Below, piece after piece: positions 10,458 to 47,347 of a DNA stretch of 54,167 nucleotides. The notes beneath the pieces were generated by a model. The model was given only the letters and a program-made list of their open reading frames with translations, had not been told where the DNA came from and did not search any database. Made by a program: the position numbers and the translations under genes. Origin of the DNA: Octopus sinensis. Lineage: Eukaryota. The DNA is taken from the NCBI RefSeq assembly GCF_006345805.1, contig NW_021833811.1, positions 1 through 54,167 of the forward strand, written 5' to 3'. The first letter of the stretch is position 1, and every line of letters starts with the position of its first letter.

Positions 10458-10789
10458 TCTAATGATACTGACTTGTGATTCAGTTTTTCGAGGTTGCACC
10501 ATGGTTATACCGATTAAATGTGGGATAAATATAATAATAAGAAGGATGAAATTCAAGGATGGAATTTATAAATAGTTAATACACCGCTACGCGCGTTTCC
10601 ACAAATCACACGATTTAAACATCGGACTCCGTATCCTTGAGATTGGTACAGTATAGTCCGTATTATCCATGGGCATCCGATTGATCATCATCATTCATTC
10701 ATTTAATCAGGTGATACTACATTAGTGGATGAATTACAGAGGAACTCTGACTAAATTGGCCTTTATACTGGCAAGACAGGATGAACATA
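10458..10789. repeat. Duplicated block, paralogous to 46144-46477
   Basis: By-eye alignment shows a single substitution (caggtgatac vs caggcgatac) over ~330 bp. Confidence 0.95.
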
Positions 10790-11329: not shown

Positions 11330-11429
<100 letters not shown>

Positions 11430-11510
11430 TATATTATACATACATACATACATGCATGCATACATACATATGTGTGTATATACATATGTATATATATATA
11501 TGTATGTGTG

Positions 11511-11545
<35 letters not shown>

Positions 11546-11585
11546 CACACACACACACACACACCACACACACACATATATATAT

Positions 11586-11663
11586 ACTTTGATACTTTGA
11601 TACTTTGATAGGTTTCGGCCATTATTGGCCCAGGCCATGTCTAACTTAATAGCACCACCTGGT
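11586..11663 (-). mobile_element. CR1-A 3' tail only (~80 bp) with (ATCAAAGT)x3
   Basis: Identical to the terminal sequence at 2188-2265 apart from one extra octamer. Embedded in TA/CA repeats. Confidence 0.9.
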
Positions 11664-11667
11664 GTAT

Positions 11668-11710
<43 letters not shown>

Positions 11711-11749
11711 TATATTAATATATATATATATAATATATATATATACTAG

Positions 11750-12085
11750 ATGTGTTTTTGCGTGCTCTCCGTGGTGATGGCTAAATTCTTAAACAATTTA
11801 AAATATAATATATAAAATATATAATAAAACTTTTACATACAAATAACTTGAAGACAATTCCTCTGCAACATCTTGTCTGTTTTCTAAGTAGAAATGCTTG
11901 TCAAGAACGATATGTTACTTGCTTAAATCTATCTTCTTTATGAAGGAAAATCATTGTATGAACTTTTCATCGATTTATCAATATCAGATGCCCTGAATTA
12001 TTTACATTAATTATGAATATGATCTGCATTTAAATGCATTAATATATTGACGTACAACTCACTTATGATGGTATATCATTAAATG

Positions 12086-12090
<5 letters not shown>
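11750..12090. repeat. Duplicated block, paralogous to ~46630-46975
   Basis: Colinear alignment. The first half is clearly diverged; the second half (from aaggaaaatcattg) is nearly identical. Confidence 0.9.
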
Positions 12091-12153
<63 letters not shown>

Positions 12154-12250
12154 TAATACATATATATATATATCCATATATATATATATATTATATTATA
12201 TATATATATATTATATCAATACACATCCATATATATATACATATATATAT

Positions 12251-12288
<38 letters not shown>

Positions 12289-12309
12289 TATTTAACTATA
12301 TATATATAT

Positions 12310-16410: not shown

Positions 16411-16602
16411 ACAACTGACAATTTTAGGACACTAACACTATGAAAAACGTGGAAATTTTACCGGTGAGTGTGTTACATAATAAGGCACAAAAAGAAAATG
16501 ACTCTCCCCAGACACAATAGAATATACTTCAACACACGAACTCATATAAAGAATCTTGCAAACCAAATCCAAAAGCGAAACATTATTTGTATTATTATTA
16601 TT

Positions 16603-19600: not shown

Positions 19601-19916
19601 TTGGTGTTGTTGTTTCGTCTATTTTGATTCTTGGGAGGTATGGTCGGTGGTCCATTTTGAGCTCTGTGGTTTTCAGTTCTTTGATTATTTTACTTTTTAT
19701 ATTATCATAATCATTAGGCTCCCCTTCGTTGTTTACATCGTGTTTGTTGGGAATGTTACGTTTGTTTTCGTGTTTTAATGTTTCAGTGTTTATATTACTG
19801 GGCATTGTTGTGTGGCTTCTATCTACATTTTCCTGGTATATTTTTTCTTTTAGATGTTCTATTTCTATTTCTGATATTTTTTTTGTGTTGAGAATGTATC
19901 TTCGTACGTTAGCTAA

Positions 19917-19917
<1 letters not shown>
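16603..19917 (-). mobile_element. R4/Dong-clade LINE (family R4-A), 5'-truncated, with a nearly intact ORF
   Basis: The 963-aa ORF has RT motifs (YRPITCLP, EEQKGC, WIDYKKAFDS, GIFQGDTLSPLLF, LLYMDDLK) and the CRICG..ETINHIISSC zinc knuckle. After one 1-nt frameshift come the REL motifs RPDIVV..IDVSIP..EK..KY. Both ends abut (AAT)n. Confidence 0.95.
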
Positions 19918-19989
<72 letters not shown>

Positions 19990-19991
<2 letters not shown>

Positions 19992-20055
19992 ATCACTGGT
20001 TGGAATCAAACTCGGCATCTTGGGTTTAGTAGCCCGCGCTCTTAACCACTACGCC
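19990..20055 (-). mobile_element. Short tRNA-like SINE head followed directly by (AAT)n
   Basis: Minus strand GGCGTAGTGGTTAAGAGCGCGGGCTAC..GAGTTTGATTCC (A/B boxes), then the AAT array holding R4-A. Confidence 0.65.
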
Positions 20056-27300: not shown

Positions 27301-28282
27301 GAGGCTAACTTTTTATCTGTGACATTTCAATCTCATTCAGAAGTTGACTGTAAATAAATTTGATTTATTCAATTAAAATTTTAATTATTATTTATATAAA
27401 ATCTTTGCCCGTAATTTTTTAACTAATACTGACTGTGCGATTGGGTCTCCACTGCCCCAGAACATTAATCCTCTGAAATTCAATCCCTGATACCATTTTC
27501 CCTACAGATATTAACACACAAATCTTCAAACTAAGCATTAACCGTATCGATCTCGCCAATCCATAAAGTCTTGCAAACGCCATGTCTAACGCCATCTCTC
27601 CTCTTCAATAAACTATAAACAAAGAATCCAATATTAATCTAAAGCTAAACAAAAGAAAACAAAAGGAACATTTTTACGACATGTATGGTCAGTATTGCAA
27701 TTTATGTTTTTCACAGCGAAAACTGTTTTAACCTTTCGATAACCTGAAAGAAATCGTGGGTCTACTGAGTTTACGATCAAATTTCTATTAGATTTCGTTT
27801 TCCGTATAATTGATTTCATATTTTGGTTTAACCTATACTTCGTTTAACTTGTACTTCATAAAAGTTTTCGAAGTTACTTTCCTCAATTTGTATTTTTCTT
27901 TTTTTAGTTTGAATAACAAATCCTTTCACTTTTGAAGGGAAATCAATTAAATGCAATTATCTTATCTCATATATTATTTAGATGATGAGTAAGAAGCGTT
28001 ACGTTGAAATCAAATGTTGTCCCGGTTAACTTAGTGTTTCATTCTTTGAAGGTCGATAAAATAACACCCAATTGCTTCATTGGTACTCAGGTAAATCTTA
28101 TAAATCGTCCAATGTGTGAAAGGTTTTCTAAGAGAAGACTAATTTAGAACGAAAAACGTTAGCAATAAAAATAAATTAACAAAAGAATTATCTGAATTAA
28201 ATTGACTTTATTCGCGAAGAAATACACATTTTATCAGATAGAATTATTATTAGCAAACGTGATCCGTTGAAGTCTTGCTCAC

Positions 28283-28518
28283 ATTTCATGGAGAAGTAAA
28301 TAATTTTGGGGTGAATTCCATTAAAGTTCAGATCAGTTTCTTTAGTAGACACTTAGTGTTAGTATATGAAAAGGCGGTACATGTAGAAGATACCATACAT
28401 AAACGTGAACAATCCAAGACCGAGCGGGCATACATTTGAGCCTCGATTACAAGGTTGTGATATGGATTTGGTTTGAAGGAAAAAGTTGAATAAGCTGTCT
28501 GGTCATTAATTTCTTTTT
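28283..28518 (-). CDS. PAN/apple-domain internal exon (phase 1-1), with one apparent 1-nt deletion
   Basis: Acceptor ttttttctattgcAG|AA and donor AAAT|GTGAGC. Translation EKEINDQ..SVLDCSRLCMVSSTCTAFSYTNTKCLL/KETDL..IIYFSMK. Length 236 nt, one short of a multiple of 3. Confidence 0.7.
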
Positions 28519-29055
28519 CTGCAATAGAAAAAATGGAAAGAGGAAACACAATAAATATAAGAGCATAAATGAAATTATTTCTCTTCATTGACAAGGTACA
28601 AGGGAAACGAATAGATAGGGTCTATTAATTCGATAGATCGATGTTATTAATGTTCCGTTTGGACATCTTTAAGTTAGTGTGAACAGGGAGTGAGTTCCTG
28701 AGTGTTGCATAATCTAGAAAGGAAGGATTGGGGATAATAATTGATGGGGGATCTGGCTGGTGAAATAGCATGTATGACAGAAGGAGAAGGGGTATATTGC
28801 TGGTTATCTCAGAGGTAGAGTCGTTCTCGTATTACCAGCGAGATGCATTAAGGTATTTCTGAGCAAGTAAGTAATGAAGCGTGTTGAGATGTTTAATGAC
28901 AGAGATGTTTAATGACAGGATTAATATTAACCCATCTGCCAGATTTTAAATGTACTTGTGTGTTAGTTTTACTACATCTTTTTGCAAGACTATTATTACG
29001 GTGATGAACTTGCATACCAAGTGACCTGATCTGAGATCGTGTGCTAGAACGAAAA

Positions 29056-29245
29056 CAATTGCAGTGTGGAAGGTGTTTATAAGCCATTTAAGAAACACAC
29101 AAAATCCGTTAGATTCACTTCAACATTTAAATTTAATTAGTCAAAATATTTTCGTCGCTTTCCGACCGTGACCTCTTCACTGACAAAATCCCGTGCTGCA
29201 GTGTGTTTCTTAAATGGCTTATAAACACATTCCACGCTGCAATTG
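29056..29245. repeat. Hairpin with 45-bp inverted arms (43/45 identical) and a 100-bp loop
   Basis: 29056-29100 is the reverse complement of 29201-29245 with 2 mismatches. Confidence 0.92.
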
Positions 29246-29529
29246 TATTAATTATTTATTTATTTATTATCTATTTAACTAAAAATTAAGACGCTAAGTA
29301 GAAATAATCATGAAATGAAGAAGAAGAAAGCGATATTTATAAATTTCTTTATTTTTTGCGTTGCGGAAGAAAGAGATATTTAAAATTTTCAGTTTTGTTC
29401 GGCGTGCACTGGAGACAGAAGATCGATGAATTAAAGATCAGGAACAAGACACAGAATCAAAGAACACTAAAAATAAACAACTAAATAAAAATGGTCTTAC
29501 TATTAACGAAATAATAGGAGCCGAAAGCA

Positions 29530-29740
29530 CATCCTACGGAGCTGATGTCCTTCAATGTATATGACTGACTGAAATTATTCCAAAGTTCTGAAATGGAAAA
29601 AGATGATGTAAGAACGCAGAAACTATGATCCACGGATTGTACCGTAATCTTTTCCGGAATACGGACTGTGATCGTAAGAAATACGTGATTTGTGAAAACT
29701 CGCGTAGCGCTGCATTAAAATATTTATAAAGTCCGTCTAT
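29530..29740 (+). pseudogene. Possible degenerate C-type-lectin-domain exon
   Basis: CI*LT (WIGLT-like), DCTVI in a shifted frame, and TDCDRKKYVICE. In-frame stops. Nucleotide homology to minus-strand 10575-10695 and 46260-46380. Confidence 0.4.
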
Positions 29741-29761
29741 GAAATATAATTAGTAATACGA

Positions 29762-29792
<31 letters not shown>

Positions 29793-29805
29793 TGTGTGTG
29801 TGTGT

Positions 29806-29844
<39 letters not shown>

Positions 29845-30662
29845 GTGTGTGTGTGTGTGTGTGTACAACATTTGCCGGCGTTATGGACACACCCTCACAT
29901 AAGACGCAGCCCTATTTTACAAGGATATTTTACGGAAACAGCAAATGCTATACAGGATGTGAAACTCGTATTTCTGGATGTGATGCTTTGTGTTACCGCG
30001 ACAGACCACAAATTGGAAAATAAGGGAAAAAAGACTAAAGAACCAAACACAAATGAATGACCAAGAATGGAACACAACAAGAAGGAGGCGCTGTTGTACA
30101 AGCGATGCCTCCGACATATCATCAGGTCTGATCATTGCAAATGGCTGCCAGGTGGATGAAAGTTTAACATTCCATTCAACTTTCTAGGAGCATTTTTCAT
30201 TTAGATAAAGAAGAAATGTTCATAAAATGTAACCTAGTTCTTTAAATAATGTAATTTATATATCAGATGTTGGGGAACGAGGTAAGTGAGGTGATGACAG
30301 CGTATCGTAATCAATCTTTCGTAAGTTTGTGATAACAGACTGTGATAATTCGGCTTGTGTTCAACATTTTATTATTAGTAACACAATTTACTGTAATGAT
30401 TTGGCTTGTTCTGATTATTCTTTTATGAGCAACAGTTTTTGCGCCAAGAGAACTTCCCAAGTACGCTCGTCCTGCTCCCTAGCCTACGGCGCTCGGCCTC
30501 CCTTCCGTAATGTGGCCACATTAGACGCATTTGATGCATTTAAAAATAAGAAAAGCGCGTCCAATCTGCCGGCAAATACGGTACATACATACATGCATAC
30601 ATACATAATGTTCGTACGTATGCATGCATGTCTTTGAATGTATGTATGTATGTATGTATGTA

Positions 30663-30753
<91 letters not shown>

Positions 30754-30855
30754 CACACACACACACACATACAACAGCTAAAGGTGGTGCCTCAGTATAG
30801 TCTACGTAAACTGTGACTAAAAGTGCAATAAGATGTAAAGCAACTTTGCACTTAC

Positions 30856-31086
30856 CTCTGCTTATTTCAGTGTAAAGTGCACCTGTGCCACACCACACAG
30901 AAGAATCATCATGATTTTTACTTGACAAAATGCATTGTCCGCTACTTATACCGTAGTCAAACGATTGACAATTTGGATTTGCTTCACATCTATAGATACA
31001 CGCCGTGTAACTATGACCAGACGTGTCACTAATATCATTGTTACCAGGGAGAAAAGCGTTGTCAACTACATCCATGGGACATTTTC
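30856..31086 (-). CDS. PAN/apple-domain internal exon (phase 1-1), intact
   Basis: Acceptor ttttcttctttcAG|GA and donor AGAG|GTAAGT. 231 nt, open: [49 protein letters not shown]. Confidence 0.88.
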
Positions 31087-31189
31087 CTGAAAGAAGAAAA
31101 TGGATAAAGGAAGTTTTTCTTATTTTCGTTCTCGTAAGAATGGCGGGTGTGTACGCTTATAGTGGACCATTTTATTATTTTGGATTAAT

Positions 31190-31279
31190 GAATAATAATA
31201 ATAATAATAATAATAAATAGATGAAAAATATATATTAATAATAATATTAATACTAATAATAATAATAATAATAATAATA

Positions 31280-31323
<44 letters not shown>
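31190..31323. repeat. (TAA)n array, left end of the R4 cluster
   Basis: Directly visible. Further (TAA)n tracts at 33401-33462, 34763-34786 and 38617-38688. Confidence 0.95.
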
Positions 31324-31324
<1 letters not shown>

Positions 31325-33399
31325 GATCCTTGAGAACTGTCACAACAAGCGCAGAAATCTCAGCACCGCATGGATTGACTATAAAAAGGCCTTCGACAGT
31401 ATACCGCATCCATGGATCTTGAGATCGCTGGACATCTTCAAAATTTCCCCTGTGATTTCAAACTTCCTGAAGCACAATATGTCTTTGTGGAATACGAATC
31501 TCCACTTATACTACTCTAATGGAGTACTTGCCTCAGAAAATATAAACATCAACTGTGGAATTTTTCAAGGTGACTCACTTTCACCTTTAATATTCTGCAT
31601 AGCCCTAATACCCCTTACAAGTGAATTAAACAGAACAGGGTATGGGTATAAAATTGCCAATAAAAAATTAAGCCATCTATTTTATATGGATGACTTAAAA
31701 CTTTATGGTAAAGACAATAATGAACTTGAAGGCCTATTGCGCACCGTGAAAGCATTCAGCGATGACATCGGGATGGAGTTTGGACTTGAGAAGTGTGCCA
31801 AGGCCACTTTCCAGAAAGGGAAAGTGAAGACCACAAATTCAGTCGTGTTAGATGTTGACACAGTCATAAGAGAGCTTGAGCAAGAACAGACATACAAATA
31901 TTTAGGGATAAATGAAGGCTCTGGTATTCAGCATGCAAGCATGAAAGAGAAAATCAGGAAGGAATGTTATAGGAGAGTTCGTGCAGTCCTGAATTCTGAA
32001 CTAAATGCACGTAACAAGGTGTTAGCTATAAATTCCTTAGCAGTTCCAGTTGTTACTTATAGCTACAATGTGTTGAACTGGAATATGAGTGAAGTAAAGA
32101 ATATAGATAGGAAAATACGCAAGCTGCTGAGTTGTAATAGGATGCACCATCCAAAGGCAGACGTAGATCGCCTTTACCTTCCCAGAGCCAAAGGAGGTCG
32201 AGGCCTGATCCAATTTGAACTAGCTTACAAAACAACCACAATTGGACTGGCCAAATATCTCGAAATATCGAATGACTGGATGCTAAAGCTCGTGGAAAAT
32301 CACGAGAGACGAAAGAAGCTTCATTCTATCATAAAGGAAAACAAAACATTTGCTATTGATCTCGTGCAGGATACCCAAACTGAACAACCCGAGGGAAGTA
32401 CGGCAACTATTGTTGCAAAGAAGGTGAAAATGATGGCAATGAAAAAAGCGCACGAGCAATTGGCTGATAGGTGGGAGGAGAAACCTCTGCACGGCAAATA
32501 TGTGACCCGCAGCAAACAAGCTGATATTGACCAGAAGCAAACCCATCAGTGGCTACGGAGCTCAGGGCTAAAAGCAGAGAGCGAAGGTTTCATCCTGGCT
32601 GCTCAAGATCAAAGCCTATTAACCCGAACTACCAGGCCAATGTGATGAAAAATGGAGCAGACCCAAAATGCCGATTCTGCAACGACATGATTGAAACAGT
32701 GGACCACCTAATCTCTGGATGTAAAGTCTTAGCACCAGTGGAGTATAAATTAAGACATGACAGAGTTGGCCAATATCTCCACTGGCTAATAAGTCGGCAT
32801 TACAATATCAAAACTGCCGACAAGTGGTATAATCACCACCCTGAGGCTGTAACTGAAGGAGAAAATGTAACCATTCTGTGGGACTTTCCAGTACATACAG
32901 ACCGAACCATCAAGGCCAATAAACCAGATATTGTTGTGAAAGACCAAAACAATAAAGTTTGCTTATTGATCGACATGAGCATCCCCTGTGATCATAATAT
33001 CTCAGCGAAAGAGTTTGACAAGCTCAGAAAATATAAGACTTACTCATTGAAATTGAGAAAATGTGGCATCTCAAGGCGGTTACAATACCAGTGATCGTAG
33101 GAGCACTAGGAATGATCAAGAAGGGAACCGAAAATTATATGAGAATGAACCCTGGCTTACCATCCCTGCAAGAAGTGCAAAAGATTGTCTTAACTGGTAC
33201 ATCACACGTATTGAGAAGAGCATTGTCGATGTGAGAACTGTTGCTGCTCATGTATTTTAATTTAACTTTAAAAAAAAATGAACGAACTACTGAGTTTGGT
33301 TTAATGGCCTATCAATATATACTATGAGTTTCTTTGCCCTAGGAGTCGGGAAGACACTCGGCAAGAAATAGAAGCAAGTTTGAAAGAAGAAAAAAAAAA

Positions 33400-33400
<1 letters not shown>
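31324..33400 (+). mobile_element. R4/Dong LINE family R4-C, 5'-truncated copy 1
   Basis: GIFQGDSLSPL, LFYMDDLKLY, CRFC..ETVDHLISGC, RHD, KPDIVV. Same 3' UTR as 14345-15017, ending in poly-A plus (TAA)n. Confidence 0.95.
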
Positions 33401-33463
<63 letters not shown>

Positions 33464-34762
33464 GATAGGAAAATACGCAAGCTGCTGAGTTGTAATAGGA
33501 TGCGCCACCCAAAGCAGACGTAGATCGCCTTTACCTTCCCAGAGACCAAGGAGGTCGAGGCCTGATCCAATTTGAACTAGCTTACAAAACAACCACAATT
33601 GGACTGGCCAAATATCTCGAAATATCGAATGACTGGATGCTAAAGCTCGTGGAAAATCACGAGAGACGAAAGAAGCTTCATTCTATCATAAAGGAAAACA
33701 AAAAATTTGCTATTGATCTCGTGCAGGATACCCAAGATGAACAACTCGAGGGAAGTACGGCAACTATTGTTGCAAAGAAGGTGAAAATGATGGCAGTGAA
33801 AAAGCGCACGAGCAATTGGCTGATAGGTGGGAGGAGAAACCTCTGCACGGCAAATATGTGACCCGCAGCAAACAAGCTGATGTTGACCAGAAGCAAACCA
33901 TCAGTGGCTGCGGAGCTCAGGACTAAAAGCAGAGAGCGAAGGTTTCATCCTGGCTGCTCAAGATCAAAGCCTATTAACCCGGAACTACCAGGCCAATGTG
34001 ATGAAAAATGGAGCAGACCCAAAATGCCGATTCTGCAACGACATGATTGAAACAGTGGACCACCTAATCTCTGGATGTAAAGTCTTAGCACCAGTGGAGT
34101 ATAAATTAAGACATGACAGAGTTGGCCAATATCTCCACTGGCTAATAAGTCGGCATTACAATATCAAAACTGCCGACAAGTGGTATAATCACCACCCTGA
34201 GGCTGTAACTGAAGGAGAAAATGTAACCATTCTGTGGGACTTTCCAGTACATACAGACCGAACCATCACGGCCAATAAACCAGATATTGTTGTGAAAGAC
34301 CAAAACAATAAAGTTTGCTTATTGATCGACATGAGCATCCCCTGTGATCATAATATCTCAGCGAAAGAGTTTGACAAGCTCAGAAAATATAAAGACCTAC
34401 CCATTGAAATTGAGAAAATGTGGCATCTCAAGGCGGTTACAATACCAGTGATCGTAGGAGCACTAGGAATGATCAAGAAGGGAACCGAAAATTATATGAG
34501 AATGATCCCTGGCTTACCATCCCTGCAAGAAGTGCAAAAGATTGTCTTAACTAGTACATCACACGTATTGAGAAGATGTGAGAACTGTTGCTGCTCATGT
34601 ATTTTAATTTAACTTAAAAAAAAAAAAAATTTTTTTAAATGAACGAACTACTGAGTTTGGTTTAATGGCCTACCAATGTATACTATGAGTTTCTTTGCCG
34701 TAGGAGTCGGGAAGACACTCGGCAAGAAATGGAAGCAAATTTGAAAGAAGGAAAAAAAAAAA
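33464..34762 (+). mobile_element. R4/Dong LINE family R4-C, 5'-truncated copy 2
   Basis: Near-identical to 32105-33400, with small indels including a 10-nt deletion at the ORF end. Confidence 0.95.
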
Positions 34763-34786
34763 TAATAATAATAATAATAATAATAA

Positions 34787-37700
34787 GAGAGAACACCGGG
34801 GACGTTTAAGATGTAAGAAGGAAAATACAGAGCTCCGAAATGATGTATTTTGACTCGATATCATCTCCACGCAACACATGTAAACATGCGTAGAACATCA
34901 AGATCATCCCCGACCCTAAACACCATGTACAAAGGAACTACGAAGAAATTAAATGCCACCGATACTATTCAACCCAAGAATAACAATCGAGCGGTACGTA
35001 CATTAAACTTACAACAAAAAATGTACGAAAAACTACACGTGCGAAATAATGTGACAACAGAAATAAACGGACCGGTACCCTACGAAAATGACGACCGTCA
35101 AAATAATGGGCCGGACGTTGTACCTCATGTCCCGCAAATAAAACCCAAAAGACGTAAATGGACACGTGAGGAATACATTTCTATCTTACACGCATACTTC
35201 ACAGCAGTACTCTACCCAAAAAATGAAAATACAACAACACATACATATAAAATATGGAAGGAAAATAATAGAGATATAGACTTGGATACAGCAATGAACC
35301 CTAATAAATTAGCTAACGTACGAAGATACATTCTCAACACAAAAAAAATATCAGAAATAGAAATAGAACACCTAAAAGAAAACATACACCAGGAAAATGT
35401 AGATAGAAGCCACACAACAATGCCCAATAATATAAACACTGAAACTGTAAAACACGAAGACAAACGCAACATTCCCAGAAACACGATGCAAACAACGAAG
35501 GGGAGCCTAATGATTATGATAATATAAAAAATAAAATAATCAAAGAACTGAAAACCACAGAGCTCAAAATGGACCACCGACCATACCTCCCAAGAATCAA
35601 AATAAACAAAATAACAACACCTATTATAAACAGCATAAACCTAGCCGTCACTGAACTGATAGCCACTGAAACAAAAAAAAGTGATATCACTGAGCTAAAT
35701 AACCTAATATACGCAGCAGCCACTGCAGCCACAAAAGAAGCTGGATACTCACCCAAACCCGCCCAAACAGGAGTACCACCACCCAAACAAACCCTGTGGA
35801 TAAATAACATCCAAAGCAAAATAAAAAAAATTAGAAAAGACCTGTCGATTCTTAATGAAATCAGCAAACAATCAACGCTACTGAGCAACAAAAAGAGAAC
35901 AAAAATACTCCGCAAATATAACATCACACAGAAAGATTTGCCTGAAATAAAAGAAAAGCTGAAGCAAGATATCCTTGCCAAAGCACAAAGGATCCGCCGG
36001 TACAAGAAACGCCAACGCTTCTTTGAAGAAAACAAAAAGTTCAACTCCAACCCCCAAAAGTTCTACCAAGAACTGGGCAAAAATAAAATAGAAGTCACTG
36101 CAGCACCAACGGCAGAAGAATTGGAAGAATTCTGGGGAGAAATATGGTCGGCGAACGAACCACCAAAAAAAAGGAGTATCAAAATAACAAACTCGGCATC
36201 TGAACAACTTTGGACCCCCATAACAACTGAAGAGGTCACCCAGGCACTGCAAAGACTAAGCAACTGGAAGTCACCTGGCATGACAAGATCCCCAACTTCT
36301 GGTTGAAATATCTAACAGGAATGCACAAAAAGCTGGCTGAAACTTAAACAACGTACTAGCAGAGCCAGAGACAATGCCTGAATGGCTCACGAAGGGGAAA
36401 ACCATCTTATTCCAAATCAAATGAAACGATAACCAGAAAACTACAGACCAATAACCTGCCTCCCTACTATGTTCAAGGCATTTACTGCAGTGATATCACA
36501 AAGGCTGAACAAGCACCTGGACGAAGACAAACTGTTCCCAGAAGAGCAGAAAGGATGCCGCAAAGGCTTATATGGCTGTAAAGATCAACTAATGATTAAT
36601 AAAGCCATAACTGAAGACAGCCACAGAGAAGAAGAAAGGCCTCAGTATGGCCTGGATTGACTACAAAAAGGCGTTTGATAGCATCCCCCACACATGGATC
36701 CTCGAAACACTAGCCATTACAAAGTAGCACCAACAATCATAAAATTCATAGAGCACTCTATGAATAAATGGCAAACAGTCCTACACCTCCAAACAAAAGA
36801 GGGACTCATGAAAACCAAAGACATCCCCATTAGAAGAGGAATATTCCAGGGAGACACGCTCTCTCCACTCCTTTTCTGCTTGGCACTGTCACCTCTATCT
36901 GATATGCTAAATAGAACTAGATGCGGATATAAATGTTACGGCAAAACGATCAGCCACCTTTTATATATGGATGACCTAAAACTATACGCTGCAAATGACA
37001 AACAGCTGGAACACTATTAAAGACAGTTCATGGATTTACCAAAGAAATAAATATGAAATTTGGATTAGAAAAATGCGCCAAAGTAACCATGAAAAGAGGA
37101 AAACTAGTTAAGAGTAACAACATCACACTAGATAAAACCAATGAAATAAAGAATTAGACCAAAGCCAAACTTACAAATACTTAGGAATCCATGAACTAGA
37201 TAAGACACAACACACACAAAATGAAAGAGAAAATAAAAAAAGAATATTATTAGACGAGTTAGATCAATACTAAACACAGAGCTCAATGCTAAAAACAAGA
37301 TAATAGGTATCAACACTTTAGCTGTCCCGGTTATAAGTTACAGCTACAATATCCTTAACTGGACACGAAATAAACTGACAAAATAGATAGGAAAACAAGA
37401 AAAATAATGACAGGATCTACGATGCCATCACCCAAAATCTGACATAGAAAGACTATATATACAACGTATAGAAGGTGGTAGTAGAGGCCTTATACACCTG
37501 GAAAACTACTATAAAATAACCACCATAGGACTGCAAAAATATCTACTTCAGAAGGAAGGAAAACTGATCCAGATAGCGGCAAAACACGAGCAAAACAAAA
37601 AACTTCTCAGTATTTAAGGAAGCTGACAAATACAAACAAGAAATCATACCACATACATGAAGACAGAAGAAGAAGAAGAAGAAAGAAACAACAAAAGCTA

Positions 37701-38615
37701 TAAAACAAATGAAATCCAAACTAAAAATAGAACAGCAACGAACCATGATAAAACGATGGCAAGAAAAGCCCCTTCATGGTAAATACTGGACTAAACTAAA
37801 CGCAAAAGAAATAGACAAAGAAAATCCCAGCAATGGTTGAGAAGCTCAGGACTCAAAGCAGAAACAGAGGGATTTTTAATTGCAGCACAAGACCAAAGCC
37901 TCCCCACCAGAAATTACCAAAAACATGTAATGAAAAGAAATATTACAAGTAACTGCAGAATATGTGGAGATGGACAAGAAACAATAAATCATATTATCTC
38001 TAGTGCCCAGTCCTGGCTAAGAAGGAATATATTCACAGACATGACAGAGTTGGAACCTACATACATTGGAAGCTATGCCAACATATGGAATAACAACAGA
38101 AAAAAGATGGTATAGGCACACACCAGAAAAGGTCACAGAAAACGAGAAAGCAACCATACTCTGGGATATGCCGATACACACAGATAGAGAAATTAAGGCC
38201 AACAGACCAGATATAGTTGTCAGAGATCATGAAGAAAAGAAATGCTTTCTAATTGATGTATCATACCGGCTGATGACAACGTGTCTCTAAAAGAAATGGA
38301 GAAACTCTCAAAATACAAAGACCTGGAAATAGAGGTAACTAGAATGTGGAATCTGAAAACAGAAACAATTCCTATCATAGTAGGTGCATTAGGCATGATA
38401 AAAAAATATTCAGACAAATACATAACAAAAACACCAGGACTTACAATCACATATAACATACAGAAAATTGCACTACTAGGCACTGCACACATCCTACGCA
38501 GAACACTTTCCATACAATAACCATCAAAGCATCACAACAAATCACAGCACATACCCAAGGCACACAGAGCTGCGCTCGGTAGTGAAGTGAAAGCACGCTA
38601 TAAATTAAAAACTAC

Positions 38616-38616
<1 letters not shown>
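34787..38616 (+). mobile_element. R4/Dong LINE family R4-A, apparently full length (~3.8 kb), with multiple frameshifts
   Basis: Extends ~520 bp 5' of the 16.6-19.9 kb copy and includes N-terminal KRRKWTREEY..YKIWKENN..NKLANVRRYI. RT, zinc knuckle and REL are present. Same 3' UTR, then (AAT)n. Confidence 0.93.
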
Positions 38617-38659
<43 letters not shown>

Positions 38660-39179
38660 TTAATAATAATAATAATGATAATAATAATAGCAAAATAGAA
38701 GCGTGCCATTGTTATCAAGTGAACGATAATTTGTACAGAATGGAGAAAAGAGGGTACTCTTGACGGACTAATAGGGTAATCTGAAACAGATCCGAGAGGT
38801 AGCCTTTAACTTTAGCCATTCAGCAGATATTCAAAAAATTAACTTGTCAATCTACTTCAATCTACTTAATTTTGGTTAATATATATAGAACTGAGGTAAC
38901 TCCCCTTGAAGATATAGATTGACAAGTTTATTTTTTGAACCTGTGGAAAACACACGAGACGTCGAGATAGCGTTCATTTGATAACAATGGCATTCTTCTA
39001 TTTTGGCTTCTATATCTTCTGAAGGAGTTACCTCAGTCCTATATATATTAACCAAAATAATTATAATGATAATAATAACAATCATAATTACTATTTCACT
39101 TATTGATCACTAGGGCCGACATATAGCAATTCAGTAGACGTGGAGAGGGGAGATATTACATAAAACAACGAGTACACAA

Positions 39180-42070
39180 TTAAAACAGTAACAATAATAT
39201 CAAACAAGAAGAATATAACATTGAAAGCTTCCCTGAGTTGGGCTCAGTTACCCCACCAATACTGAACCACTCGACACTTCGAGCGCATCCGGGAAGGGCA
39301 CCCTTCTCCCTCTCAAATCCATCGCCTACAGGCGCATTATTAGAGTAAGTCCACTCACACTGGCCATTTTCGCTACATTCACCCACCTCTTAGCACATTT
39401 CCTTGGAGGCAGCACTCATCTCTCTACCCTAATCTTTCTTTCCAAGTGAAATTTGAAAAAGTTGACATGGGATTGGTCGAAGAGAAAAGTGTCTGTCTTC
39501 AGTTTTATCAACCTGGTCCACCATACAACTCCTTTCGCTACTACGATCAGACAGAGGAAATTTGCCTACCCTCCAGGACCAACGGAAGGCGGCAGACCGA
39601 TCTTCACTGTGGATTCAGCCAATAGCCGTATCCGTTCTACACGTGTTTAATCTAAATCAAAAATAATTTAAATAAAATTATCCTCTCAACGTAAGTGAGA
39701 CACATTACAATTATTCAAGCTGCTCAACATAACTCCGCAAGTCAGTAGTGCACGGACACTGGTCGATTCCTCGCTCTGCGCACATCTCGGTCAGGTCTGT
39801 CTGACAGCGCTTCCGCGCCTGTATAGTTTATCTCGAACCTGCAGTGCCCCCTGATAGCACTGGCAAGCAAGGATTTCTACTAGTTATCCATCGGTCCCAG
39901 CTCGAAAGTCCTCCTGAACAGACTGCTCAGTTGGACATCATCGATGTCTAGTGCCTCTCCAAGGGCGTCATCGCTCTTTCCCTCCATTAAGTTGCTATAG
40001 AAATCGAGAGTGGACGTTCCACACTTGAAGAGGGGGCGCTCCAGTTTGGCGAGGTATGAACGGAGGTAAGACATGGGCGAGATGTATGGATTCGCCACCT
40101 CCCCTCGACCTTTCAGTGATAGCTTCCTCGTAGCCCACTTCTGGGTGAGACTGGCTACCCTACTCGTCACCTCGTCCAAACTCTTATCCACCTGGAGGTC
40201 TGGTCCGAACCAAATCCAAACTTTACTGGTCCGTCCGTCTGGTGCCCAGCGACGCTGTTGGACGGCGTGGACTTGCCTCTCCAAGTGCCGAGTTGCAAGC
40301 CACCGACTTTCCCGGTTTAAGTTTTGCCCCTGTCAGCTTTTGATATTCCTCCAATGATGTGCCGACCACTTCGATTTCTGAGGCGTCCGACACCATCACG
40401 GTGATGTCATCCGCATAAGCCGACACATCCCTTCTGCGTCCCGGTTCGAGCGGGATTCTCTGCAGCAGCTCCAGTTTCCGCGGTAAAGGCTCAATAGTCA
40501 ATACGTACAGAATGAAGAAGAGAGGATACCCTTGAGGGACTAATAGGGAGATCTGAAACAGATCTGAGAAGTGGCCTTTAACTTTGACCATTCAGTTGAT
40601 GCTGCTGTGAATTGCAGCGATCCAGCCTCTGAAGACGAGGCCGAAGTCATCCGCTTTGAGAATAGCCTCCAGATATCGATGGCTGACCCTATCGAATGCT
40701 TCCGATTGATCTAAATTGATCAGCGCCCCCACCGAAGCCAGGTTTACACACTACCCTTCCAATGATGTATCGCATGAGGTGGAGGCTGTTATTTATGGAC
40801 CTGGTCGGGATTGCGCATGTTTGCGCCTCCTCAACCAAATCCTCGATGACAAGCGCTAACCTCTTGGACTAAATCCTAAACTCTGTGTTAAGCAGAGTTA
40901 TGGGCCTGAAGTTATTTAATGTGACCCTCTTGATTTCATCTGTCTTTATCAACGTCACTATGCGTCGGTTCACAGAACTCGGAATACGCCTGTTCTGCTG
41001 CCAGTTGCAGTAGAGCGCTTCGAAGAGATCGGAGAACAAGTCAAGCATATCTACATAAAGCTCATAGGGCAGACCATCTAAACCAGGTGCCTTGCGACTT
41101 CTCCGGCCGACAAGGGCATCCTGAATTTCGGCTGAAGTTATCTGCAACCATGGCACACAGCGTCGACCGTCGAGAGACGTGGCAAGCCGTCGTAGAACAG
41201 CTTTGATCCCCTCGTTTGTTAGAGAACGTGCCTTGGCTCTAACAATGCAACCTTCATATTTTGCATTGAAGAACTGGTCTAATACCAGTCTCGCTGCTAG
41301 CACTTCGGTTGCAATGCCACTACAAATAGCCTCGACTAGTTTTGCTACTAACTCCTCCTTCTTTCTATTTTTTTTCAAACGCTACTTCTTTGCTAAACCT
41401 TAGCGATATTACTCTAATCTTTCTTTTGAGAGCCACTCACCAACAGCTGTTGACGACTCCCTCCCCGGTCAACTTCTGCTTAATTAAATTGTTGACCTGG
41501 TCCCTGTAAGCCTTGAGTATCGGAAATGATATTTTCAACTTCCAGTATCCGGGTCCTAACCTACGCATCTTATCTAGTTCGACCGTACATATTACAAACT
41601 TATGATCTGAATAGGCGACCGTTTAAAAAGTGGACATCCCACACTATTACTATCTATCTTCCCACTGAAATTCCTATCTATATACGATCTAGATGACCCT
41701 AGGCGGTTGGTCCAGGTCCACTCTGGCGCATTAGCGAAATCTCGTCGGTACCTGTTAGATAGTTGGAACTGGTTGATCAGGAACTTGAGGCTTTTGCACC
41801 TGCCTCTTCTATCAGCTACACCCACACAATCCCAGCGTTGGTTTAAGATTCCGTGCCAGTCCCCACTAATAGTAGAGGACGAGACGTACATAGAAAGGCT
41901 TCCAGACGCCTAAACAAATCCAGCCGTTTGGCTCCAGTAGGGGCGTAGACGGCCAGCAGTCTAAAGACACCACCTTCACTATTGCTCACGTCGTGCTTGA
42001 AAAATAGGTCAAGAACCAATCTCGCCACCTTTCCTAAATGCTGCTTATCGCTTCCTAACTGGGTCTCCAC
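39180..42070 (-). mobile_element. Degraded Tx1/L1-clade LINE ORF2
   Basis: APE: FRLLAVYAP..FRRLEAFL, SYIDR, SDHK. RT: KAPGLDGLPYELY, FRPITLLN, PQG.P, AYADDITV. C-terminal WQCYQGAL.VRDKLY..PRC and KIRVER..KRW. Confidence 0.9.
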
Positions 42071-42099
42071 CTACTCTAGATTTGTTTATCACTAATGCT

Positions 42100-42780
42100 C
42101 TACTAGCATCTCTATTGTAGGAGCACTTTTTAGAGTCATCCATCATCAGTTGTTGACGATTGCAGCCGTCAATTTCGGGTGGACTAACTTACTAACACGT
42201 CTCTGAAAGCTTGGCGCACCGTGAAAGATGCGTTCGGCTTCTAGTGTTCAAGCACAGCCAATGGAGCTTATCTACATCCACCGTACAGATCGCAAATTTG
42301 TGTTCTGTGTAGCCGACTACTTTAAATTGTGGACAGCATATGCAATTCCTATCTTCTACAATACAGAAAACTCCATCTAGAATCGACCAGGATGACCTGA
42401 TGCCCATGTCTACATTGGTGCATTCAGGTAATCCAGTTGAAACTTGTCAGTCATATTGAAACGACTGGGCAGGTTTAAGAGGCTTTTTGCATCTTCTCCT
42501 ATCAGCCTCACACAGTTTAGACGTGTAATGAAGATTTTCCGAGGAACACCTCCCGAAGCTCGAAGAAATTTGGCCGCCCTTCTCCCATTGGAAAAACATT
42601 GATTGCCACAGACCTGAAACGACCACTTTTCGCTACCACCAACGGCCAAAACAACCAACTTGCTGACCAAGCCTGGGAAGATTGGCTTCATCTCAAGTTT
42701 CAGTCCTTTCCGAAACAGCACTGCCATTCCGCGTCCCATTACAGGTCAATGGAAAGGGGAATGAAGCGGAGATCTCAAAT
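42100..42780 (-). mobile_element. Second Tx1 endonuclease fragment
   Basis: GRGMAVLFRKGL..LVVLAV and SILDGVF..CPQFKVVGYTEHKF repeat the APE domain in the same orientation. Confidence 0.75.
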
Positions 42781-43306
42781 TCATCAAAAATAGGCGCGAA
42801 ATTTGTTTTTACGCAATGGCTACCACCGGTGCTCCAGCATGGCCGCAGTCAAATGACTGAAACAAGTAAAAGAGTAAAAGAGTATATGTTCACGAAAGAG
42901 TATTTTCGAAGACTATGAAAGTTTATCCTTGCAGGGATAAACTCAAAAACGGATAATTTTCTTTTCTTATTTCGATTGAAAGGTATATGGGTTTCGAACC
43001 AAACTGATGCGATAGACTGAGATGCTGCAATATATGGAGCGACAGAACACAAGAGTTGTATCAGGAAATATTGATGGTTGTTAACATACAGAATGGGACG
43101 ACGTGGCGATTACACAATACCAAACATTTTGCAAGTGAACCTAATTCAATGAAACTTCAATATTCACACACACGCACAAGAATATTTGACTGCAAAATAA
43201 ATGAATACACTTTCGAAATATTAAGTAAGATTTATGCGGAGAATATCACTGCTGAACAGAGCGGTTCTAAAGATATGTTTAACAGATCCCGACCCAAAAA
43301 CTGACA

Positions 43307-43307
<1 letters not shown>

Positions 43308-43351
<44 letters not shown>

Positions 43352-43480
43352 TCTCTCTCTCTCTTTCTCTTTCTCCTTGTCATTCTCTCTCTTTCGTCTC
43401 CTCTCTCTCTCACTCTCACTCTCTCTCTTCTCTCTCTGTCTCTCTCTCTCTCTCTGTCTCTGTCTCTCTGTCTCTCTCTG

Positions 43481-43527
<47 letters not shown>

Positions 43528-43810
43528 TTCTCTCATTGAATCTGACTTGTACACGCATACATGAAGACATTCTGTTTACTTTGGAGTTAGCAATGGAGGC
43601 AACGAACCCAGCTTACAAACGAAAAATATTGTATATGAAGCGTTGGATTAGCAAAGTGTACGGCGTAGAACTACAAAATAATAAATACAACGTGATTGAT
43701 TTTCATCTGAAAAACATAAAGCAAGCGAGAGAAAAGAGATGGAAGGAAGAAAGAAAGAAAGAAAGATAGAAAGAAAGAAAGAAAGAAGAAAGAAAGAAAA
43801 AAGAAAGGTG
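43308..43810. repeat. (CA)n/(CT)n and (GAAA)n microsatellites
   Basis: Directly visible at 43308-43530 and 43740-43810. Confidence 0.9.
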
Positions 43811-44424
43811 ATCAGAATTGTGAACAATTTTGATTTGATCCAGGTTGAGGATTTTCATTCGTTTATGGATGAGTTACCCAATTTGGTTCCAAATTTCTTC
43901 ATTTTATACGTGAAAAAATTAAATCTGTGTTTCACACATTCAGTTAATCTTCTGTAATTATTTTACGCAATTTAAGTAAAACTCGTATCATATCCTCATA
44001 TAGTGTAAGATATCTGTTCGTCTCCCTCACAGACTAATGTCATCTACACACAATTTAGATATTACACCCCAGACATGCATTATTTTCATCATCAAAGATA
44101 TTGAGAATATTCACTGACAGTCACGTGACAAAAACCTAAACACACAACCTTTTGACAAAACGTTGCCTTTTCTCTTTTCTCCTTGGTAATCTTGTGTCTC
44201 AATCCCAAAATCTATGCTAAGCGCATCAATCAAACCTTTATTAGAACTTTCACTCTCTGAAACGAAAACTCTACAAACAATTTTTTATCCACAGACACCA
44301 TTCGACATTGACCAGAGAAATCGTAGAGACTTTTCAAATGCCGACAGTATTGTCTCTCTTTCGATTGAAACATAGAATACAAGTCAAGGAATGAAATAAA
44401 CCCAGAAGATTCAAATTTGTTTAC

Positions 44425-44682
44425 CGTCTCTATACTTGGTCGGCACAGTTCTTCTCAACTGATAAAAATAGGCATTATTTTCCCCTGTTAGAATTTTCTC
44501 TGTTGAGTCATTTTCGTATAAAATACATCTTGGACTTATCGTTCTGCTCACGAAGGATTTACATGCAGAAGTTTCAAAACACCTCTTCGAACAGTCGAAG
44601 GCATCCACATCAAGTGTCATCAATGTTTTAGCATCTTTCAGATCACAGTGTTGTACTTTTATAAAATACGTCAGATATTCAA
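44425..44682 (-). CDS. PAN/apple-domain internal exon (phase 1-1), intact
   Basis: Acceptor ggtttttgttacAG|TT and donor GACG|GTAAAC. 258 nt, open: EYLTYFIKVQHCDL..AFDCSKRCFETSACKSFVS..PRCILY..AYFYQLRR..YRD. Confidence 0.85.
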
Positions 44683-45987
44683 CTGTAACAAAAACCAGGC
44701 AATTAAACAACCCAAATAGGAAGACGTAAATAAAATATTGTGAAAATATATAATATAAAGAAAGAGAATATTAAATGTTTGACGATCAACATTGTATGTT
44801 TACTAGGAAGAAGTGATAAAGTTGTTACTACCATAGTGTAGGTACAAAGCATCTTGGAATATATTATCTGTTTAATAAATATGAGTTTTTAAAGTTGTTT
44901 AATTCTCATATTTAAATGATTCGTATGTTATGTTCTATAATGTTCAACGGTTGTGCATTGTAAAGTTTGCCCCAGTATCAGCACTTTGTCAAATTTAACA
45001 AAATGCTTAGAAACTGACGAAACACTGACGAAATGGAAATTATGTTCAGAATTGAATTCGTCATTATTCGGCGGTTTTATCTTGAACTTAGAATTTTAAA
45101 TTTTCTTTTCAACTAATTTACTATGAGAAGGAAAATATTTTCCTATACTGAACTTATAAATTACAATTTTGCGCTGTGATTTTTATAATGTTTATAGATA
45201 AAGGTCTATATATTGATATAAATCTACTCACGTCCATTTCCAAATGTCAATGAGATGTAGAAGAGAACTGCAACGAAAATTTATTTTGTAAAATATTTTA
45301 TATTCCATGTCCACGTTTAACATTAATTTACAAACATTAAAGACGAAAAGATTAAGAAAGAGAAGTGTTATATGCATAATTCGATAATAAATACGACGAT
45401 GACCACCACCACATCACCATAAAAATATAATGCGAGAGTTGACCACATTCTTTCTGCTGATCCATTCCTTGTCAAACCCAATTATGTTCTTAGAAAGGAA
45501 TCTATGTCCACTGGATCATGTACCATCATTTGGAGACAAGAACGGTTAGGAAGGGATAAAACATCAAAGACGATACATAATAACCACCTGACCACAATCG
45601 GGGAAATGACAGACAAAGATATCAAAAAGAAATCGTACAAGGATAAATTTATCAAAGAATGAAACAATATTTGTACTCAGATTGATATCGCAATTACTTT
45701 TTGCAAAAAAATTTCCTGGTGAGAGATGTGGAAACTGTCAATATTCACGATCCATGAATTTAAAATGAACAAGAATCAGGTATGAATTTGAAAACGATAT
45801 GACTGAAGTACAAGATAAAAGCCATATCAACGATATTCTCAGTTCAAAAGATGATCCAGTTAAACCCGGCCCACATGGTACGCAAGACACTTTCAATTTA
45901 GCCGTACATCTCAAATAGTTCCCTATATAATCACCGACCAATAAAATATTTACATTTTACACACACACATACTGTAAAGAATCACAG

Positions 45988-46975
45988 CGAAACCATGTAA
46001 CACAACACATTCTCCAGACATTAACTGATCCAATAAAAAAGACAGCATATATTAATCTATATTCAAGAAAATAAAATCTGAGTAAAAACCTCCTAAATGA
46101 AATGCATCGAAAGATATATTTACTCATGCATAAATAAGGTTACCGTCTAATGATACTGACTTGTGATTCAGTTTTTCGAGGTTGCACCATGGTTATACCG
46201 ATTAAATGTGGGATAAATATAATAATAAGAAGGATGAAATTCAAGGATGGAATTTATAAATAGTTAATACACCGCTACGCGCGTTTCCACAAATCACACG
46301 ATTTAAACATCGGACTCCGTATCCTTGAGATTGGTACAGTATAGTCCGTATTATCCATGGGCATCCGATTGATCATCATCATTCATTCATTTAATCAGGC
46401 GATACTACATTAGTGGATGAATTACAGAGGAACTCTGACTAAATTGGCCTTTATACTGGCAAGACAGGATGAACATACTAGAATTATTGTTGTTATTGTT
46501 GTTATTATTATTATTGGGTGAGAGGGCAGTGCACGCAATCAAAGTGACACTGGAGTAAAATATACAAGGCCCAATATACTCATGATCATAACTACCCGTC
46601 TGATAAAGGTACACCAGACACATGCATCACAGCCGTATGTGTGTTCTTGCGTGTCTCACTCGTGATGGTTAATTCTTAACAACTTAAAACATAATATATT
46701 AAATATATAATAAAATGTTTACATACAAATAACCTGAAGACACTTCCTCAGCAACATCCTCTCTGTTTTCTGGGTAGAAATGGCTATCAAGAACGAAATG
46801 TTACTAGTTTAAATCTACTTTCTTTATAAAGGAAAATCATTGTATGAACTTTTCATCGATTTATCAATATCAGATGCCCTGAATTATTTACATTAATTAT
46901 GAATATGATCTGCGTTTAAATGTATTAACATATTGACGTACAACTCACTTATGATGGTAAAATCATTAAATGATA
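45988..46975. repeat. Condensed paralogue of 1-140, 10458-10789 and 11750-12090
   Basis: The three blocks occur in the same order and orientation and are nearly contiguous here. Confidence 0.92.
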
Positions 46976-47038
46976 CACACATACACACAGACACACACAC
47001 ACGCATATATATATATATACCTACATACATATATATAC

Positions 47039-47078
<40 letters not shown>

Positions 47079-47127
47079 GTATGTATGTATGTATGTATGT
47101 ATGCATGTATGTATGTAAGTATGTAAG

Positions 47128-47158
<31 letters not shown>

Positions 47159-47347
47159 GTATGTATGTAAGTATGTAAGTATGCATATCACAGTATCAGT
47201 CAGACTATTAGTTGTTATACATCACTGGTCACAATACGCTCCGCATTGTTGTAGCTTTTGAATGATGCCATCGCACTGGCTAAGTGAGATGGCCAACATT
47301 CCCTTTGATCGGAAGGTTGTTGCGTCACAGGGTTATTCATTTACAGT

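Follow-up and report, generated by a model that had tools for sequence, protein, structure and literature searches.

The three PAN/apple exons on the minus strand of this Octopus sinensis DNA are, very probably, exons 3, 4 and 6 of a single six-exon gene (46757-28328), whose product would be a small, secreted, disulfide-rich protein with three PAN modules. The window, by which we mean the whole stretch of 54,167 nucleotides analysed, comes from scaffold VCDQ01003230.1. The spliced coding sequence measures 834 nt and yields 277 amino acids, with a frame open across all 277 codons; each of the five introns is GT-AG and lies in phase 1, and ten of ten splice sites are canonical in the window, every junction being based on gene models and conservation. 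Membership of the three exons in one gene, as put forward in the original prediction, is borne out by this single coding chain and by the same exon order in P0002 (window scaffold), P0063 (a redundant contig), P0001 (O. bimaculoides) and P0014 (Argonauta). The O. bimaculoides orthologue P0001 (LOC106868906, named 'Apple domain-containing protein' in UniProt) is 70% identical and has an identical exon chain, and P0063, a full-length NCBI model of 277 aa from a contig that shares 99.5% identity with the window, agrees with the six-exon model in 274 of 277 residues. Contrary to what had been supposed, the gene is not hidden: RefSeq already annotates it on this scaffold as LOC118761606 (CDS 46757-29481; protein P0002, 220 aa), and because it is in the public annotation our result is a set of corrected exon details, not a discovery. 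P0002 reads through the exon 5 donor and stops inside intron 5, without exon 6, of which real intron retention could be the cause. The practical gain is thus a corrected gene model, since the RefSeq version is truncated on this scaffold and the true chain has six exons, with the third PAN exon last. Rfam, at gathering thresholds, gave no match in the window.

A core of four to six cysteines is the defining feature of PAN domains (PMC9249922). Each of the three exons does encode such a unit, with scores above the curated gathering score of 21.4 bits that served as cut-off for Pfam PAN_1 (PF00024), and the whole protein reaches 68.1 bits over three stretches. Exon 3 (44425-44682, minus strand, 258 nt) encodes PAN-A, with four conserved cysteines (28.0 bits, E 1.9e-6); exon 4 (30856-31086, minus strand, 231 nt) encodes PAN-B, the core of a six-cysteine apple domain (38.0 bits, E 1.5e-9); and PAN-C, in exon 6, scores 23.8 bits. 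The predicted sizes, AG/GT borders and 1-1 phases of the first two exons stand, as does the acceptor of the third at 28518, but this last exon is not a symmetric one of 236/237 nt. Missing from the predicted set were three further exons, namely two signal-peptide mini-exons and a linker exon, so that the proposed junction 30856>28518 passes over a conserved 87-nt exon. This linker, exon 5 (29501-29587, minus strand, phase 1-1, ELWNNFSQSYTLKDISSVGCAFGSYYFVN), is conserved with its AG and A/GTAAGA borders in five loci and holds the invariant Cys205, which completes, with the five cysteines of PAN-B, the six-cysteine apple pattern. Invariant in nine sequences are Cys53/57/63/75, Cys111/138/142/148/160 together with Cys205, and Cys251/255/261, while Cys271 is present in eight of the nine. 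Architecture and C-terminus are kept in Argonauta and in distant Octopus members, with 14 cysteines counted as invariant, and the conserved cysteines presumably pair in disulfides. Scanning the window with a crude HMM of the three exons gave no further PAN exon.

Upstream, the predicted signal peptide is split over two mini-exons. The coding part of exon 1 (46727-46757, minus strand, 31 nt) begins with the ATG, encodes MLLRKCLQVI and ends in phase 1 at a GTATGT donor; it is the CDS start of LOC118761606 and was found by tblastn of P0002/P0003 at 100% identity. Exon 2 (45232-45267, minus strand, 36 nt, phase 1-1, borders AG and GTGAGT) contributes FLFYISLTFGNG, the hydrophobic core and the end of the putative signal peptide. 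The resulting N-terminus, MLLRKCLQVIFLFYISLTFGNG, starts with basic residues, continues into a hydrophobic core and closes with small residues, and is kept in paralogues. The signal-peptide-like ORF extensions upstream of the PAN acceptors are, as had been argued, intron sequence, for homology to relatives ends at the acceptor. A TATAAA box (46823-46828, minus strand) lies 66-71 nt upstream of the ATG, within a proximal promoter block (roughly 46965-46758, about 170 bp). Identity between this block and the 5' end of a paralogue at 11.8-12.1 kb is about 95%, with CATAAA in the paralogue in place of TATAAA.

At the 3' end our model departs from the original one, in which the third PAN exon was complete and symmetric. 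The coding part of exon 6 (28328-28518, minus strand, 191 nt including TGA) is the terminal coding exon, and its four-cysteine module matches PAN_1 over profile positions 16-53 of 76. The frame closes with an in-frame TGA (28330-28328) six residues after Cys271, the last cysteine, and an AATAAA polyadenylation signal (28207-28212, minus strand) follows 116-121 nt past the stop in all eight aligned copies. The stop region is common to eight genomic copies, including the O. bimaculoides orthologue, and relatives at 25-34% identity (distant Octopus, Argonauta) end three to six residues past the same cysteine. Beyond the stop, DLNFNGIHPKIIYFSMK can be read in the -1 frame up to a GTGAGC; when this tail is appended, the PAN_1 score rises from 23.8 to 28.2 bits and the match extends from profile position 53 to 70. 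No canonical slippery heptamer was seen on reading the sequence, and the -1 frame as a relic or alternative coding continuation was rejected as the leading interpretation, since the stop keeps its position as far as Argonauta and the AATAAA is conserved as well.

The tail bears on two other accounts of the locus. Under the first, all three PAN exons would be symmetric cassettes (phase 1-1), with a donor at 28283 closing the third; their skipping or duplication would give alternatively spliced isoforms, and the chain would run into further downstream exons. Exons 3 and 4 are indeed symmetric, as are exons 2 and 5, the DLNFNGIHPKIIYFSMK frame does end at GTGAGC with a gain in score, and the paralogue models P0006 and P0012 omit the symmetric linker exon in frame, though it is intact in L007. 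Against this, the in-frame TGA is kept in eight copies with AATAAA some 116 nt on, members as distant as Argonauta terminate at the same place, the -1 frame has indels in two copies, and the proposed donor (GT at 28282) reads ATGAGC in one intact paralogue; its use as a donor is not supported. In-frame skipping in the gene models involves the linker exon only, no model skips a PAN exon, and the annotated isoforms X1/X2 of a paralogue differ in the first exon alone; cassette splicing of the PAN exons thus finds no support in the sequences compared, and we regard this account as highly improbable. Slightly less remote, though still quite unlikely, is that the third PAN was ancestrally full length until a 1-nt indel removed its last strand, its old coding sequence and donor persisting in the 3' UTR. 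Such a history would explain why the tail lengthens the PAN_1 alignment and stops precisely at a GT by which phase 1-1 would be restored at 237 nt. However, a stop shared by Argonauta and the distant Octopus members means that the truncation would date far back, and by now a relic free of constraint would be expected to have decayed. Among these young paralogues the 3' UTR and the coding exon are conserved to a similar degree, which makes conservation uninformative about coding, and in the AlphaFold model described below the third unit gains an extra N-terminal strand (208-218) and folds compactly without the missing one.

A further question is whether the window carries an intact gene. A non-functional duplicate or pseudogene, with the truncated 220-aa NCBI model reflecting a real defect, might be suspected from the end of that model in intron 5, from a 1-nt frameshift in exon 4 of the sister contig L002 and from high dN/dS. 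Among the O. sinensis models on redundant contigs, LOC118761468 and LOC118761180, the latter is distorted by a 1-nt frameshift in exon 4. Yet six of six exons are open in the window, none of the ten splice sites departs from the canonical form, and the exon 5 donor is the same in other loci. The window, L002 and L008 are moreover 99.5-99.7% identical and colinear over 36-37 kb, many small indels apart, which makes them redundant assemblies of one locus; the frameshift of L002 may have arisen during assembly, and the full-length NCBI model lies on L008. The pseudogene explanation, very unlikely in our view, was rejected because all exons and splice sites are intact.

The fold was examined on an AlphaFold prediction for P0001, the 70%-identical orthologue of the window protein (pLDDT 81, pTM 0.68; residues 1-20 below pLDDT 50). 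The model has a strand-strand-helix-strand-strand order in each of the three units, so that the PAN fold, in which a helix packs against an antiparallel sheet, is present three times in the predicted structure. A PDB sequence search gave a single weak match (2yil, E 0.3), an apicomplexan microneme apple-domain lectin. Foldseek, with probability 1.00, ranked the apple arrays of factor XI and prekallikrein best (E 6e-9), followed by MIC4, the SML-2 lectin and the HGF N domain. With factor XI and plasma prekallikrein the octopus protein shares tandem PAN/apple modules over about 275 aligned columns and the six-cysteine pattern of PAN-B plus linker, but identity is only 14-17%, there are three modules instead of four, two of them with four cysteines only, and no protease domain; the low whole-chain TM-scores (0.26) indicate that the domain arrangement differs. 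The Toxoplasma MIC4 and Sarcocystis SML-2 lectins (Foldseek E 2e-6 to 2e-5) are likewise small, secreted proteins of tandem apple modules alone and are known ligand binders, although they belong to an unrelated lineage and the likeness is at fold level only. The N-terminal PAN (hairpin-loop) domain of HGF and plasminogen has a four-cysteine core like PAN-A and PAN-C (single-domain rmsd 2-3 Å, TMt up to 0.74), but the octopus protein is devoid of kringle or protease modules. The closest relatives outside the family are giant octopus multi-PAN proteins, LOC106869390 (1730 aa, E 6e-33) and LOC118764742 (2643 aa, E 1e-21), in which the pair PAN-A plus PAN-B is repeated many times (14 and 21 PAN_1 stretches, respectively); they differ in also having Sushi domains and in being 6-10 times longer. 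The small three-module layout, in which a linker precedes a short third PAN, is confined to the present family.

The 13.3-kb gap between the first two PAN exons proved to be a real intron, intron 3 (31087-44424, minus strand, phase 1, 13,338 nt), which retrotransposon insertions have lengthened. Retrotransposon DNA that entered at a (TAA)n microsatellite accounts for about 8 kb of this intron, and the orthologous O. bimaculoides intron, of about 5.5 kb, lacks the array block and has an uninterrupted site with only (TTA)8; the length of intron 3 is thus of retrotransposon origin. The main insertion is a head-to-tail array of three non-LTR retrotransposon copies (31325-38689, plus strand), antisense to the gene and each with a (TAA)n end, in which the RVT_1 matches are clear and those to zf-RVT weak. 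The (TAA)n runs lie at 31186-31324, 33401-33463, 34761-34786 and 38617-38689; the segments 32097-33427 and 33456-34786 are 95.8% identical, and 35302-38637 is 96% identical to 19923-16582. Elements of the R4/Dong type encode a reverse transcriptase followed by a zinc-finger/restriction-like endonuclease, and their insertion into (TAA)n gives tandem copies. A (TAA)n-bounded, reverse transcriptase-carrying array would fit the 'R4' label of the original prediction. A second, degraded non-LTR element (39880-42739, minus strand, RVT_1 at 40223-40591) is in sense orientation with a broken frame. Tx1-type elements, the other insertions named in the original prediction, combine an apurinic-type endonuclease with a Tx1-clade reverse transcriptase; by Pfam, the broken frames of this minus-strand element gave no endonuclease domain. 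The (TAA)n-targeted array is a clean example of intron growth in octopus.

The gene belongs to a family that has expanded in tandem and has been seen in octopods only, with many paralogues on one chromosome. The window itself holds the 5' end of a tandem paralogue (10450-12305, minus strand), comprising promoter block, exon 1 (ATG 11871, MLQRNCLQVI, donor GTATGT) and part of intron 1, 81-93% identical to 46138-47188; its remainder runs off the left end of the scaffold, and positions 1-140 match 45987-46137. P0001 and P0063 served as queries for the exhaustive search and the contig look-up. The exhaustive search gave only 40 clusters at E<=1e-3, and the named matches with E <1e-9 are all from Octopus or Argonauta except one multi-PAN protein of the oomycete Aphanomyces, whose best match is a 32-residue stretch. 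A literature search on octopus and cephalopod apple/PAN proteins and on the LOC identifiers found no paper on the family. PAN-B is the most variable module, with a mean identity among paralogues of 47% vs 70-74% for PAN-A and PAN-C. Values of dN/dS are about 0.4-1 or higher, and about 0.6-1 in PAN-B, used as a pattern only since the per-exon estimates come from 40-200 sites each and are individually not significant; relaxed constraint also fits them. Between exons of the same gene pair, dS varies up to ninefold.

That all introns are in phase 1 suggests that the gene was probably built by module duplication; the giant relatives, with 14-21 PAN_1 stretches, would fit such a process. The expected protein would comprise the split signal peptide, a four-cysteine PAN-A, a six-cysteine PAN-B with its linker, and a third PAN ending soon after its fourth cysteine. 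Elsewhere, PAN/apple modules act by binding extracellular ligands. The gene is a real multi-PAN gene, as proposed, and by analogy we infer that its product is extracellular, being secreted and binding a carbohydrate or protein ligand there; the fast-diverging central apple module (PAN-B) probably sets the ligand specificity of each paralogue. More tentatively, and at well below an even chance, we may be dealing with an undescribed, octopod-restricted tandem family of small secreted three-PAN proteins with a hypervariable central apple, the flanking modules being homogenised by exon-wise gene conversion. This reading draws on the low PAN-B identity (47% vs 70-74%), the ninefold dS spread, the PAN-B dN/dS of about 0.6-1 and the many paralogues on one chromosome. 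If true, a hypervariable PAN-B would be the pattern expected of a diversified recognition repertoire, such as lectin-like immune, mucus/sucker-surface or reproductive proteins. The family represents a lineage-restricted octopod expansion of a classic extracellular binding module, apparently unstudied, and if its variable central domain is the specificity determinant it would add to the octopus-specific gene expansions and offer a tractable set of secreted binding proteins.

When the peptides of the three exons were joined and used in a protein search, they retrieved the O. sinensis model P0002 (LOC118761606), located on scaffold VCDQ01003230.1 of assembly GCA_006345805.1, and its annotated coding region lies on the minus strand of the window at 46757-29481; the gene is therefore not hidden, contrary to the original prediction, and both it and its O. 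bimaculoides orthologue (P0001) are already annotated. The three proposed PAN exons do belong to it, but three other coding pieces had been missed, which were located by tblastn with relatives and had their borders read directly. The resulting minus-strand model begins with exon 1 (46757-46727, 31 nt), carrying the ATG (MLLRKCLQVI) and the donor GTATGT, and exon 2 (45267-45232, 36 nt), which holds the remainder of the putative signal peptide, followed by exon 3 (44682-44425, 258 nt) for the first PAN module (PAN-A), exon 4 (31086-30856, 231 nt) for PAN-B, the linker exon 5 (29587-29501, 87 nt, donor A/GTAAGA) and the terminal exon 6 (28518-28328, 191 nt including the TGA) for PAN-C. The spliced coding sequence has 834 nt, encoding 277 aa, and all five introns (1459, 549, 13338, 1268 and 982 nt) are GT-AG and phase 1. 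Exons 3 and 4 are phase 1-1 units as first described, each with a single open frame, bordered by acag and gtaaac and by tcag and gtaagt, respectively, while the direct junction 30856>28518 fails, given that the linker exon sits between these two sites. In the 220-aa P0002 of NCBI, the exon 5 donor is read through into the intron (ending in SKTIFI and a stop), and exon 6 is missing.

The third PAN exon has the acceptor proposed for it, at 28518, but not the end at 28283, because an in-frame TGA occurs at 28330-28328 (after CLLKKLI), and the 236-nt version would require a frameshift. In an alignment of eight genomic copies (the window, the sister contig, the O. bimaculoides orthologue and five paralogous copies), the stop region is kept and an AATAAA lies 116-121 nt downstream of the stop in every copy (28212-28207 in the window); one intact paralogue carries ATGAGC where the proposed donor GTGAGC would be, and in two copies the -1 frame beyond the stop shows indels. 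Distant members, namely P0014 of Argonauta hians (34% identity) and P0022 and P0016 of O. bimaculoides (25%), stop 3-6 residues past the same cysteine, and because they share this C-terminus position the short third PAN module is ancestral for the family. Past the stop, the -1 frame of 28327-28283 (minus strand) reads DLNFNGIHPKIIYFSMK and ends at GTGAGC, and appending this tail raises the PAN_1 score from 23.8 to 28.2 bits, extending the reach of the profile from position 53 to 70 of 76. The family-wide stop speaks against a coding role for the tail, which is probably a chance match or an old relic, and we regard the extended match as a curiosity rather than as coding evidence.

The PAN identity of the exons is upheld by Pfam PAN_1, with 28.0, 38.0 and 23.8 bits for the three peptides in order, all above the gathering score of 21.4; the match to PAN_2 is borderline, and those to PAN_3 and PAN_4, also suggested at the outset, do not reach threshold. 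A scan of both strands of the window with a crude HMM made from these three units yielded no additional PAN exon. Fourteen cysteines are conserved among nine aligned members (13 in all nine, Cys271 in eight), four of them in PAN-A, five in PAN-B, one in the linker exon (Cys205) and four in PAN-C, and those of PAN-B together with Cys205 form the six-cysteine apple pattern, with a putative disulfide pairing of C111-C205, C138-C160 and C142-C148. The window protein also has two N-glycosylation sequons, N80 and N190. The AlphaFold2 model, which is that of the orthologue P0001 and was built from an 11-sequence alignment (pLDDT 81.2, pTM 0.68), contains three strand-strand-helix-strand-strand units, and its N-terminal 20 residues are of low confidence, as a signal peptide would give. 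When this model was compared with the PDB by Foldseek, the apple arrays of factor XI and prekallikrein came top (E 6e-9, approximately 275 aligned columns), followed by Toxoplasma MIC4, the Sarcocystis galactose lectin SML-2 and the N domains of HGF and plasminogen; SML-2 was also the sole PDB match at the sequence level, a weak one. The proposed reading as a modular PAN protein, presumably secreted, holds, and by analogy with other PAN/apple modules its function would be extracellular ligand binding.

The same gene appears on two other contigs of the assembly, VCDQ01003107.1 and VCDQ01003282.1, which match the window colinearly over 36-37 kb (99.5-99.7% identical, dozens of small indels), and all three appear to be a single locus assembled redundantly. 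NCBI has given them three gene names and three protein models (220, 254 and 277 aa), complete in only one of three: P0063 (277 aa, LOC118761468), on the third contig, is identical to our window model at 274/277 residues and its gene spans 18.44 kb, versus 18.43 kb in the window, while a frameshift of 1 nt in exon 4 of the second contig distorts the model there, P0003. The suggestion of alternatively spliced cassettes finds no support in the annotation, since the third exon is terminal, PAN-exon skipping is absent from all gene models examined, and isoforms X1 and X2 of the paralogue LOC118766713 differ in the first exon only. The symmetric linker exon is skipped in frame in the models of two paralogues, P0006 and P0012, although exon and splice sites are intact at the P0006 locus, and the differing cryptic donors within exon 6 in P0003, P0006 and P0008 may be artefacts.

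The length of intron 3 is explained in large part by retroelements. Three head-to-tail non-LTR copies, antisense to the gene (31325-38689), each end in (TAA)n and have RVT_1 and weak zf-RVT matches, for which the R4 label of the original prediction is plausible; two are 95.8% identical to one another, and the third is 96% identical to a minus-strand element at 16582-20018 with an intact 963-aa ORF (17127-20018; RVT_1 E 5e-31, plus zf-RVT). Because of this identity, the latter may be a recently active, (TAA)n-targeting element. The orthologous intron of O. bimaculoides has 5.5 kb, with both flanks kept and only (TTA)8 at the matching site, so approximately 8 kb were inserted at a microsatellite in the O. 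sinensis lineage. Intron 3 also holds a degraded reverse-transcriptase element in sense orientation (39880-42739). Microsatellites in or near the gene are (CA)20 followed by (TC)92 at 43311-43534, (TG)52 at 29762-29864, (TATA)27 at 30641-30750 and (TATG)36 at 47040-47183; the (TC)n run gives rise, on either strand, to spurious ORFs longer than 100 aa.

The roughly 170 bp preceding the ATG, with a TATAAA at 46828-46823, recur at about 95% identity at 11.8-12.1 kb, and an intact exon 1 of a paralogue (ATG at 11871, MLQRNCLQVI, intact donor) comes after this second copy. A second family member, in tandem on the minus strand (10450-12305 and 1-140), is represented here by its 5' end, comprising a conserved promoter block, exon 1 and an intron 1 split by approximately 10 kb with reverse-transcriptase fragments at 3030-3749 (minus) and 7445-8167 (plus); since homology resumes at 1-140, past the insertion, the remainder of this paralogue continues past the left edge of the scaffold. 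The linker and terminal exons recur next to annotated paralogues at other loci (L005/L006, approximately 39.4-39.6 kb, and L007, the P0006 locus, approximately 2.0-2.8 kb). An inverted copy of these exons (L006b) carries frameshifts, and the paralogue cluster therefore also holds pseudogene fragments.

The family has a narrow range. An exhaustive HMMER search with P0001 against 1.84 billion representatives returned only 40 clusters at E<=1e-3, and all named matches below 1e-9 were from Octopus or Argonauta, except for one multi-PAN protein of the oomycete Aphanomyces, whose best match spans only 32 residues; the weaker ones were generic PAN proteins of a nematode and an annelid. We found no paper on this PAN family. 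Each Octopus species has many members on one chromosome, and two giant relatives, in which Sushi domains accompany 14 and 21 PAN_1 stretches, are consistent with phase-1 modules having been duplicated. Mean identity across seven close members is 74% for PAN-A, 47% for PAN-B and 70% for PAN-C. Nei-Gojobori estimates per exon (3, 4 and 6) across the window and four loci of relatives (L001, L004, L006 and L007), which rest on few sites, gave dS values of 0.08, 0.76 and 0.27 for the three modules between the window and L007, differences of up to ninefold between exons of one gene pair (from small counts), and dN/dS of approximately 0.4-1.9. This uneven dS, few as the sites are, may point to gene conversion acting exon by exon around a middle module that diverges freely, or to mosaic paralogues. 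Conceivably, the family represents a diversified recognition repertoire.
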